Assembly: GCF_023055435.1 (NCBI RefSeq)
Contig: NW_025964013.1
Coordinates: forward strand, 2,976,001-3,040,000
Reading direction: 5' to 3'
Origin: Haliotis rufescens
Lineage: Eukaryota
DNA length: 64,000 bases
Positions within the stretch are counted from its first letter, which is position 1, and each line of letters begins with the position of its first letter. The position numbers were made by a program, and so were the translations under genes. The notes under the pieces are model-generated. The model saw nothing but the letters and a program-made list of their open reading frames with translations. It was not told where the DNA came from and searched no databases. Shown here piece after piece: positions 5,109-8,321 of this stretch.

Positions 5109-8100
5109 ATGCTGAAGATTGTGCTGATTGCCTGCGTTGTGTATCTGGCCCAGGTAAGTAGCCTGCACATGTTATTTCCTATACATTTTATTAGGGCACT
5201 TCCCTTGTGTGGTGGCCTAACTTTGGTTGCTGGTGATCTCTAGCCAACTCTTATATTGTATTGTATTGATTAGTCCAAATTTTATAGTTACTTACTAGTT
5301 TTATATTTATAGCTGTGATATTCTAGTTATTTTACTGTCCTTTGCCGACAGATTTTATAGGTTATAGTTATGTATTATTACTGTACAACTTGATTTAGTC
5401 ACGATATGGCTGAAATATTGCCGATGTGACTATAAATCTTAACTCACTCACTCAATCACTATTAGGGCACTGTTGACTGCAGCTTTAAACACCATTCATT
5501 CACTCTAATGTGCAAACGTAGGAAGATTTCTGGATTGCTTAGGATCGGGAACGATGACTTACAACCATCTATCATGGCGGTTGGAAGTCACAGTGGTGGT
5601 GTACAGTGTTTCGTCTCTTTACCCGATGTATTTCGATGTGCAGTATGTAGAATGGAAAAGGTACACGTGACATGTGAAACGTAACAGTTATATAAGTGCA
5701 ATAATCTTGGACGCGACGTTAAACCCCATATATATATTTTTTAATTCAGCTTGTACAACTACATATGGGGCATGGGTGGCCCAGTCGTCTCAAGCGCCGC
5801 ATTTAGCTGTGCAGAGTTGCGTCCCTTAAGCTTGGGTACGCCAGAAACGTATGAATGTGGGTTCGAATCCCGGGTCGCCCTGATGTTTCGATGTTTCTCA
5901 GCACCATACCCGTGCTTTTGGATTTCACCAAAGTGGTAAACGTCTGAGACCTGTGGTTTTCCTTCTACAGTAAGCTGACACGCAGAGGTATAGGTGGAAT
6001 ACTGTTAACAGCGATGTGCAACCCGACTCACTACAGTACATATGATCAGTGAAGTATCTTTTCGTTTTCTACAATACTTTTGACGCATTATATTTCAGGC
6101 CCAGACAACCCTTGCTCCCAAAGCAACTCACCATCCTCACCACACCCACGCGGTCCACACCCACGCGGTCCACACCCACGCCACACCTCCTCCACATGGG
6201 GCATTCTCCTTCGCCTACGACAAGAACATAGTATGTAGTTCATATCAACACGTTGTAGGTTTGTGTTGGAGCGCATTCCTGTTATCAATCTTATAGATAT
6301 ATTGGTATTTAATAACGTAACTTCATATTTATATAATAGCCCACGGATACGACAAACTAAAGGCTTATAATAGACCATAAATTACTAATTGCTAACAATA
6401 CGATAAAATATAAGTCATACATTATGCGGCAAGAATATTCGAGAAATTATACCCTCGATTATTGCCGTCTCATTGCCCGCCCGTATGACGCAGGGTGAAA
6501 TGGTGATGATCTCCAAGACTCACTGCTACCTGTGGGCACTGTCCGACGCCCAGAAGATGGACATCCATGACCCTGCTAAGATAGAGACACTTGAGGTAAT
6601 ATATACAGTTGGCGTTTGCCAATTGGGGTAACATAAGCCAGATATTACAGTGAAATTGTATAAGTATGTTTGTTGCCGTGACTCTCCGTTATGAGTGTTG
6701 TTGAGTGGGGGGACATCCAGTGTACTTTTAGGTCAGAGATACTTTTGAATCGTTAACTCTGACGTCCATCGACTTCCATGTTGCGTTTATTCATTCAAAA
6801 TACACTAATCGTGAACTCCGGTGGAAATTCGTGAAATAATTCTTGATTGCAAAGTCAGTGATGAGGCTTGCTATACGTTGCATAACTTAATCAATTTAAC
6901 CAAATACAACTCTGATTTTGAATAAATAGAATGCAAGGCATCAAAACTATCACCAACATTACATCGTCTATCTAGTAGAAAGATCAGACATATTGACATA
7001 CACCCAATCAGTCTGAGTAGATGATGCATAAAATAGTGTAACAGATCTCTGCTACACACATGCAACATCCATGTCATCGTATCCAAATAGTGTAACAGAT
7101 CTCTGCTACACACTTGCAACATCCATGTTATCGCATCCAAATAGTGTAACAGATCTCTGCTACACACATGCAACATCCATGTCATCGCATCCAAATAGTG
7201 TAACAGATCTCTGCTACACACATGCAACATCCATGTCATCGTATCCAAATAGTGTAACAGATCTCTGCTACACACATGCAACATCCATGTCATCGTATCC
7301 AAATAGTGTAACAGGTCTCTGCTACACACATGCAACATCCATGTCATCGCATCCAAATAGTGTAACAGATCTCTGCTACACACATGCAACATCCATGTCA
7401 TCGTATCCAAATAGTGTAACAGATCTCTGCTACACACATGCAACATCCATGTCATCGTATCCAAATAGTGTAACAGGTCTCTGCTACACACATGCAACAT
7501 CCATGTCATCGCATCCAAATAGTGTAACAGATCTCTGCTACACACATGCAACATCCATGTCATCGTATCCAAATAGTGTAACAGATCTCTGCTACACACA
7601 TGCAACATCCATGTCATCGTATCCAAACAGCGTAGATTCATGCACATGATGCCAGTCACTGAACTGTCTGGTCAGTACAAGATTATTTACAAATGGAATG
7701 TAGCTGGAATGTTGACGATTGAAGCGTTAAATAACAAGGAAACAAACACTATATCATAAAAATGGAACATAATTAATTAAGTCTTAAAATCAGGTATCTA
7801 ATTCAATTCGATACTTCAAAATTAACATGCCTTTTAACAAAAACACTTGTGTATGGAAACATAGATCTATCGATCACCTACGCATCAAGGCATCTTACAA
7901 TGGCTGCCAATAACCTATTAGAATAAGAACAACGGTTAATAAGACAAGATGCAATTTATTTCAGAAACACACACAATAAACTTAAACACAAACCAAGCAA
8001 TTAAACTAAGAGGTATGTAGTCAATTAAATAAAACACAAACCAACCGATAAAACTGATAGGTATGTAGTCAATTACCAACACAATTAACCAACCATTTAA

Positions 8101-8321
8101 ACTAAGAGGTATGTAGTGTACAGTTACATTCATACGGTCGGCCTTTCTACTAAGTGATGTATTGGCATATACGATTATTACTTATTCCACTTTTACAGTT
8201 TCAACTCACTGCCCTCGCCTCCGACACCACGAAGCAGACTGTTCTGACAGGAACCCAAAGCCCGGACCATTGGGTCACACGACATTGTCATAACAGGATC
8301 ATGGTGCAGGTTGCAGCCTAA
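5109..8321 (+). CDS. Gene A: secreted His-rich protein with two-Cys (BRICHOS-like?) domain, 133 aa; join(5109..5153,6099..6230,6494..6595,8199..8321)
   Basis: Manual splicing, all GT-AG phase 0: MLKIVLIACVVYLAQ / AQTTLAPKATHHPHHTHAVHTHAVHTHATPPPHGAFSFAYDKNI / GEMVMISKTHCYLWALSDAQKMDIHDPAKIETLE / FQLTALASDTTKQTVLTGTQSPDHWVTRHCHNRIMVQVAA*; TATAAAA 5048; AATAAA 8358; conserved with four paralogs. Confidence 0.9.
5767..6030 (+). mobile_element. tRNA-derived SINE family 3
   Basis: ggggcatgggtggcccagtcgtct head, gggttcgaatccc B box, actcact tail; copies at ~13646-13905, 25001-25263, 33541-33717. Confidence 0.7.
7031..7628. repeat. 54-bp minisatellite (~11 copies) in gene A intron 3
   Basis: Unit aaatagtgtaacagatctctgctacacacatgcaacatccatgtcatcgtatcc. 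Confidence 0.95.

Follow-up and report, generated by a model that had tools for sequence, protein, structure and literature searches.

The window analysed here is a 64,000-nucleotide stretch of the 1.33-Gb Haliotis rufescens genome (NW_025964013.1:2,976,001-3,040,000, forward strand), and its main subject is a four-exon gene, referred to as gene A, together with its paralogues. These genes code for small mollusc proteins (127-149 amino acids) that are secreted and in which a signal peptide is followed by a low-complexity arm (about 25-45 residues) and a C-terminal alpha/beta domain of 85 residues. A preliminary description of this DNA had likened the domain to a stand-alone minimal BRICHOS fold, and the predicted structures presented below make a strongly diverged BRICHOS variant its probable identity. 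BRICHOS domains are a subject of research as anti-amyloid chaperones that need no ATP; to our knowledge, only one of them has a crystal structure.

Gene A lies on the plus strand, and positions 6200-8321 of the window span its domain-coding part. Exon 1 (5109-5153) carries the start codon and the hydrophobic signal peptide, MLKIVLIACVVYLAQ. Exon 2 (6099-6230) encodes the His-rich arm, AQTTLAPKATHHPHHTHAVHTHAVHTHATPPPHG, and closes with FSFAYDKNI (6204-6230), in which FSFAYD provides the first strand and its acidic residue. Exon 3 (6494-6595) encodes GEMVMISKTHCYLWALSDAQKMDIHDPAKIETLE, with GEMVMISKTHCY at its opening, and contributes the strands GEMVMI and HCYLWAL and the beginning of the long helix; the first invariant Cys lies in HCYLWAL. 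Its peptide is identical to residues 54-87 of the database protein P0012. Exon 4 (8199-8321) encodes FQLTALASDTTKQTVLTGTQSPDHWVTRHCHNRIMVQVAA and the stop codon, comprising the remainder of the long helix, a short strand, a short helix that closes with the second invariant Cys, and the last strand IMVQV; the C-terminal end directly before the stop reads VTRHCHNRIMVQVAA. All introns are in phase 0 and all exon borders are AG/GT.

Transcription was checked in the Logan contigs of four runs (two studies) over window positions 5000-8400. The joints 6230|6494 and 6595|8199, both with GT..AG ends, are seen in spliced contigs of all four runs, and spliced contigs also cover exon 2 in all four. The joint 5153|6099 (GT..AG) appears in one of the four, where a 504-nt contig of run X14 spanning 5083 to 8375 joins all four exons; in addition, the loose end at 6096 of a contig of run X2 carries the end of exon 1. 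Since the contigs are spliced, the runs contain RNA and gene A is expressed. Word depth over its exons, a poor measure, is very uneven across runs, from about 48 to 15,050.

Intron 3 of gene A contains a non-coding 54-bp minisatellite (7031-7634, 11.2 copies, 97% identity), which the 6595|8199 joint skips. The open reading frames (ORFs) at 6871-7659 (minus strand, 262 amino acids) and 7071-7649 (plus strand, 192 amino acids) are minisatellite artefacts and were rejected as genes. A block at 5740-6050, conserved among genes A, B, and C, was considered as a first exon and rejected in favour of 5109-5153; it is a tRNA-like short interspersed nuclear element (SINE) lying upstream of exon 2 in all three genes, with its other copies at 13618-13970 and 25056-25253. 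The SINE is abundant in the transcriptome contigs and piles up in all four runs, with summed word depths of 13,000-92,000.

A tblastn search of the exon peptides against the window revealed four further complete genes on the same strand, B to E, which gives five complete paralogues. Gene B (13321-18541; exons 13321-13365, 13973-14122, 14552-14653, and 18419-18541) is the closest paralogue of A. Its intron 3 owes its extra length in part to an intact-looking Tc1/mariner-type transposase ORF of 341 amino acids at 14930-15955 (HTH_Tnp_Tc3_2, E 2e-13; DDE_3, E 1e-10). Gene C (21139-26484; exons 21139-21219, 24683-24826, 25298-25399, and 26362-26484) matches the database protein P0034, of which its exons 1, 3, and 4 are exact substrings. 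The boundary between its exons 1 and 2 was placed from P0034 and the sequence GTAAGG|GT, where two candidate donors lie 6 bases apart (21213/21219); the P0034 model takes the downstream one, adding Val-Arg. Gene D (43136-48214; exons 43136-43186, 46441-46566, 47046-47147, and 48089-48214) has a product letter-identical to P0025. Immediately upstream of its last exon, a 60-bp unit occurs in 6.2 copies of 98% identity (47721-48093), each of which carries a polypyrimidine tract, an AG acceptor, and the first exon bases; the P0025 model takes the last of these copies, its exon beginning at 48089. Gene E (56894-61411; exons 56894-56944, 59727-59852, 60274-60375, and 61286-61411) has a product letter-identical to P0021.

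The last exon of a sixth paralogue, also on the plus strand, lies at 162-284 and is identical to the C-terminus of P0018; its earlier exons are upstream of the window, with exon 3 at contig positions 2974441-2974560. In a whole-genome search with the domain profile, exon 3 was matched at no fewer than 10 places, all of them at 2.936-3.047 Mb of this contig. The cluster occupies contig positions 2936369-3046590 (~110 kb) and runs past both ends of the window; further exon-3 matches number at least four on the upstream side, including one on the minus strand, and at least one on the downstream side. Ratios of nonsynonymous to synonymous substitution rates (dN/dS) among the paralogues are 0.2-0.4 in the domain exons, from small counts, and the domain appears to be under purifying selection. 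Many large minisatellite arrays, built of up to 65 copies of units 18-255 bp long, lie between the genes (11978-12914, 30419-32272, 38097-40892, 55939-56417, 57496-58058, 61765-62935, and 63162-64000), and two of them account for strong GC-skew spikes in the composition profile.

To find relatives, gene A was searched exon by exon, and the exon-3 peptides of all five genes were combined into a profile and run against 1.84 billion representative proteins. The profile returned 10 proteins at E<=0.001, four of them at E<=1e-10. Follow-up searches yielded 10 matches with one returned protein and 27 and 18 with two family alignments; the last of these, centred on bivalves, added Mya, further Ruditapes and Mercenaria members, and the product of gene C. 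All named matches come from Haliotis (cracherodii, asinina, rubra, rufescens) or from bivalves (Mercenaria, Ruditapes, Mya, Crassostrea, Ostrea) and are listed as "uncharacterized protein", and none of the family matches from the protein searches bears a precomputed Pfam domain. Judged from these matches, the family is so far known only from molluscs. No literature was found under six NCBI locus names of its members, and the excerpts available from publications on BRICHOS and abalone, histidine-rich proteins and Haliotis, and BRICHOS and bivalves or oysters, including PMC9756803 and PMC4203926, contain no description of it. Database proteins served as full-length stand-ins for the window genes: P0025 (D) and P0021 (E), both from H. 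rufescens and identical exon for exon, P0034 (C), and P0012 (A). P0012 equals the gene A product except in the first part of exon 2 (6099-6150), and P0001, likewise one of the nearest database models of genes A and B, is cut short at 109 amino acids. Both may derive from a sister species, as models or alleles, and not from this genome.

The signal peptide, read by eye, follows from exon 1 of genes A, B, D, and E, which gives 15-17 mostly hydrophobic residues after the Met. The arm had been described as His-rich, and this holds for A, B, D, and E, where it shows alternating H-x-H and, in gene A, has 11 His among 34 residues; gene C has the same domain but a Thr/Ser-rich, mucin-like arm. Full-length family proteins contain 7-19 His, and the truncated P0007 contains five. 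The motif reported at 6200-8321 is present where it was placed, but it is divided over exons 2 and 3, with the second Cys in exon 4, and had thus been read across two introns. Loosened to [FY]-x-[YF]-[DE]-x3-[GHQ]-x-[ML]-x7-11-C-Y, it occurs in all five window paralogues and, among the 32 aligned family proteins, in every one but an N-terminally truncated member (31/32); the motif recurs because the genes are homologous and not by chance. The two Cys are invariant (32/32), with no further Cys beyond the signal peptide, and the other invariant columns of the 32-sequence alignment are the Tyr following the first Cys and one Glu. The acidic column of F-x-Y-[DE] is Asp in 20 and Glu in 11 of 31 proteins, and Asp in all five window genes. 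The earlier statement that a C-terminal client peptide is missing agrees with the family as a whole, whose members stop 2-5 residues past the last strand. The convertase site R-x-[KR]-R was found in none of the 32 proteins, and a dibasic pair in two of them, in neither case between the arm and the domain.

Structural evidence carries the interpretation. AlphaFold2 models were built with family alignments for P0012 (gene A domain, model 1; 25 sequences) and P0025 (gene D, model 2; 32 sequences), and in both the domain has a predicted local distance difference test (pLDDT) score of about 93 and consists of five strands plus helices. Model 1 has strands at residues 46-50, 55-59, and 63-68, helices at 71-76 and 80-95, a strand at 100-102, a helix at 111-117, and a strand at 121-125. 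Model 2 has the same order of elements, and its fourth strand is five residues long. The helices and the short strand after the second Cys, foreseen from the letters of gene A, are present in both. In a Foldseek search of 350,542 PDB chains, model 1 has 2yad (proSP-C BRICHOS) at ranks 1-5 and 8 and 8ovi ('BRICHOS monomer') at rank 6; these matches have E values of 0.24-1.1 and template modelling (TM) scores by target of up to 0.60. Model 2 has 2yad at ranks 1-5 (E 0.3-1.2), and two different aligners rank the same fold first for both paralogues (350,542 and 48,161 chains). In the ESM Atlas, whose language-model look-alike scores are leads only when under 0.9, the nearest named clusters past the family's own mollusc clusters are gastrokine BRICHOS proteins, at 0.88 for P0025 (189 shared features) and 0.86 for P0012 (181 shared features). 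SP-C-like and OAF clusters come next, and the ten best named look-alikes are all in one clan.

According to excerpts of PMC9714404, the BRICHOS fold has four consecutive antiparallel strands, a fifth strand parallel to strand 4, and two helices, and its hallmarks are a signal or anchor, a convertase site, a C-terminal beta-hairpin peptide, a disulfide between helix 2 and strand 4, and an Asp ending strand 2. In model 1, Asp50 ends strand 46-50, Cys64 lies in strand 63-68, and Cys117 ends helix 111-117; in model 2, the equivalent Cys 70 lies in strand 69-74 and Cys 122 just past helix 116-121. Judging from the models, the Cys pair and the acidic residue fit the BRICHOS disulfide and strand-2 Asp by position, and the two Cys would form that bond. 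Of the five hallmarks, the signal is present, the disulfide and Asp fit by position, and the convertase site and C-terminal peptide are absent. The canonical strand 1 is probably either missing or part of the unmodelled arm. An extra strand of Bri2 mentioned in the same excerpts (PMC9714404) may be the counterpart of the short strand between the helices.

The BRICHOS reading is supported by structure and not by sequence statistics, and a number of results weigh against it. The 25-bit cut-off of the BRICHOS profile PF04089 is reached by none of 35 family proteins, and the abalone members have no match to it at all in Pfam at E<=10. It is the sole Pfam match of three bivalve members, weakly, at 19.3, 13, and 12.5 bits (E 0.0014, 0.12, and 0.18), over profile positions 23-85, 4-85, and 18-91 of 91. 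None of the six window exon peptides matched Pfam, and a six-frame PF04089 search of the genome left the window unmatched and hit only another contig, where a clear ITM2-like exon scores 25.5 bits. Alignment of the family profile with this exon by hhalign covers only 12 columns around CY, with a probability of 12.7%. Moreover, TPR_PEP5_VPS11 matches weakly in more members than PF04089 does (8/25, best E 2e-4). Its best score is 18.8 bits, below the cut-off of 27.5, and the matches were rejected as a long-helix artefact, the models being sheet-based. Family profiles found no BRICHOS among 177,635 PDB sequences at E<=10: the full-length profile A3 gave only T-cell receptor alpha chains (E 0.7-1.1), taken as noise from the low-complexity arm, and the domain-only profile A7 gave two unrelated small proteins (E 0.56 and 1.1). 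On the structural side, only three consecutive N-terminal strands are modelled instead of four, and a DUF1488 structure from Shewanella (PDB 2gpi) ties with proSP-C for one model. The arm is disordered in both models (pLDDT <50), with nothing showing that it docks on the domain, and the acidic residue is Glu rather than Asp in 11 of the 31 proteins. The interpretation given in the preliminary description is partly supported.

The comparison with the ITM2-like exon extends to gene structure. This exon and exon 3 of the family are both of phase 0/0, they have 37 and 34 codons, and CY stands 12 and 10 residues in, respectively. The shared exon build is suggestive of BRICHOS and not decisive.

The main rival takes the domain to be a mollusc-specific small alpha/beta fold that is BRICHOS-like by convergence only, with a function unrelated to chaperoning. 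A three-stranded meander with a helix and a C-terminal strand is indeed a common arrangement. However, two aligners place the same rare fold first for two paralogues, the Cys pair and acidic residue coincide with BRICHOS hallmark positions, the named language-model look-alikes all belong to the BRICHOS/OAF clan, and PF04089, not DUF1488, is the sole weak Pfam match of three members. Convergence is considered unlikely, and the preferred interpretation is that the domain is a strongly diverged, minimal, cargo-less BRICHOS variant, secreted and fused to an exchangeable low-complexity arm. A probability of roughly 0.65 is given to this interpretation, and the BRICHOS assignment is best regarded as a well-founded hypothesis rather than a result.

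As a minimal BRICHOS, the domain would have strands 2-4 followed by the long helix, a further short strand, and then the short helix and strand 5, and it would retain both the acidic residue ending strand 2 and the helix-2/strand-4 disulfide. The losses would be strand 1, the convertase site, and, at the C-terminus, the cargo peptide. By analogy with gastrokines and other secreted BRICHOS proteins, the disulfide-stapled sheet would expose a hydrophobic face able to bind beta-prone or hydrophobic segments, and it is from this family resemblance that a chaperone-like face is inferred. The composition of the arm suggests a pH- and metal-sensitive tail, which would tune the solubility of the protein or target it in an extracellular secretion.

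Two other views concern the arm, and both are compatible with a BRICHOS fold. In the first, the domain keeps its own His-rich arm soluble during secretion; the arm would then be the client or cargo, as a peptide that binds metal, is antimicrobial, or self-assembles. In proSP-C the mature peptide is N-terminal to BRICHOS (excerpts of PMC9714404), and in the mollusc proteins the arm is the variable part, exchanged between paralogues, whose alternating H-x-H would suit a beta-strand or a metal site. On the other hand, with R-x-[KR]-R in 0/32 proteins and both dibasic pairs (2/32) elsewhere, the stretch between arm and domain has no suitable site, so release of the arm by a convertase is unlikely. 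The arm is also modelled as disordered and undocked, and the mucin-like arm of gene C is not an aggregation-prone client, all of which leaves the arm-as-cargo view distinctly improbable. In the second, the protein is a structural or metal-handling component of mucus, adhesive, or shell or jaw matrix, or a metal transporter, in which the His arm works by metal coordination and the domain is a stable carrier. The 11 His of the gene A arm and the 7-19 His per full-length protein agree with such a role, as does tandem amplification, which is common for secreted material genes; the uneven word depth (48 to 15,050) may mean high tissue-specific expression, although depth is a poor measure. Nevertheless, it is the domain and not the arm that is conserved across gastropods and bivalves, apparently under purifying selection, and no link of such a protein to a material was found in the literature searched. 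This second view is rated very improbable.

A further and quite speculative idea, held to be a long shot, would join these elements into a self-contained, switchable BRICHOS. The H-x-H arm would be the client in proSP-C orientation, protonated and soluble in acidic granules; at seawater pH or with Zn, Cu, or Ni it would complete the sheet as the missing strand or be released to cross-link into a His-metal material. If so, molluscs would control the assembly of an extracellular secretion with a minimal BRICHOS.

Even without such a switch, the preferred BRICHOS reading would have several consequences. A natural domain of ~85 residues would define a minimal unit for anti-amyloid chaperone activity, and the BRICHOS family would be extended to gastropods and bivalves. 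Antimicrobial-peptide precursors with BRICHOS are known only from polychaetes according to excerpts of one review. The reading also gives a name and a testable function to tandemly expanded, transcribed genes of abalones, clams, and oysters that are listed as "uncharacterized", and these species are farmed.

Several known systems can be set beside the mollusc proteins. DUF1488 (2gpi, Shewanella) offers structural resemblance only: it is bacterial, has 8-10% identity, and lacks a secreted eukaryotic context, and the Pfam DUF1488 profile matched none of the 35 family proteins at E<=10. OAF provides a precedent, as excerpts of PMC9714404 present it as a Pfam-negative family assigned to BRICHOS by structure and hallmark residues, and OAF clusters are among the look-alikes of the mollusc proteins. 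OAF shows all five hallmarks and matches BRICHOS subfamilies in HHpred with E values between 1.6e-4 and 0.015 (PMC9714404, in the same excerpts), whereas the mollusc family has a weaker sequence link and lacks two of the five.

Bri2/ITM2 and the polychaete antimicrobial-peptide precursors (arenicin, alvinellacin, capitellacin, nicomicin) form another comparison, in which the ITM2-like exon shares the CY-strand motif and the phase-0/0 build with the family. As described in the source excerpts, these invertebrate and vertebrate BRICHOS proproteins combine a type II anchor or signal with a convertase site, and their C-terminal peptide is a beta-hairpin; the mollusc family has neither the site (0/32) nor the peptide.

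Gastrokines (GKN1/2/3) of the vertebrate gastric mucosa are the nearest named look-alike clusters of P0025 and P0012. Similar to the mollusc proteins, they are small and secreted, with a signal peptide, a BRICHOS domain, and no membrane anchor (excerpts of PMC9714404). Their clusters are 148-183 amino acids long and 91-100% of the members pass PF04089, which the mollusc proteins do not. In contrast to gastrokines, the mollusc family has no segment past the last strand and carries a His-rich or mucin-like arm in front.

The best structural match of both models is the BRICHOS domain of proSP-C (2yad; also 8ovi and 8ox2). Identity in the structural alignment is 11-18%, and the mollusc family has one N-terminal strand fewer; it also lacks the transmembrane SP-C segment and the long disordered loop, and has a cleavable-looking signal peptide instead. 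Nevertheless, in both, one Cys lies in the strand preceding the long helix and the other in the short helix preceding the last strand, with an acidic residue ending the strand before that of the first Cys. Moreover, in proSP-C, as in the mollusc proteins, the variable or functional segment is N-terminal to the domain (excerpts of PMC9714404).

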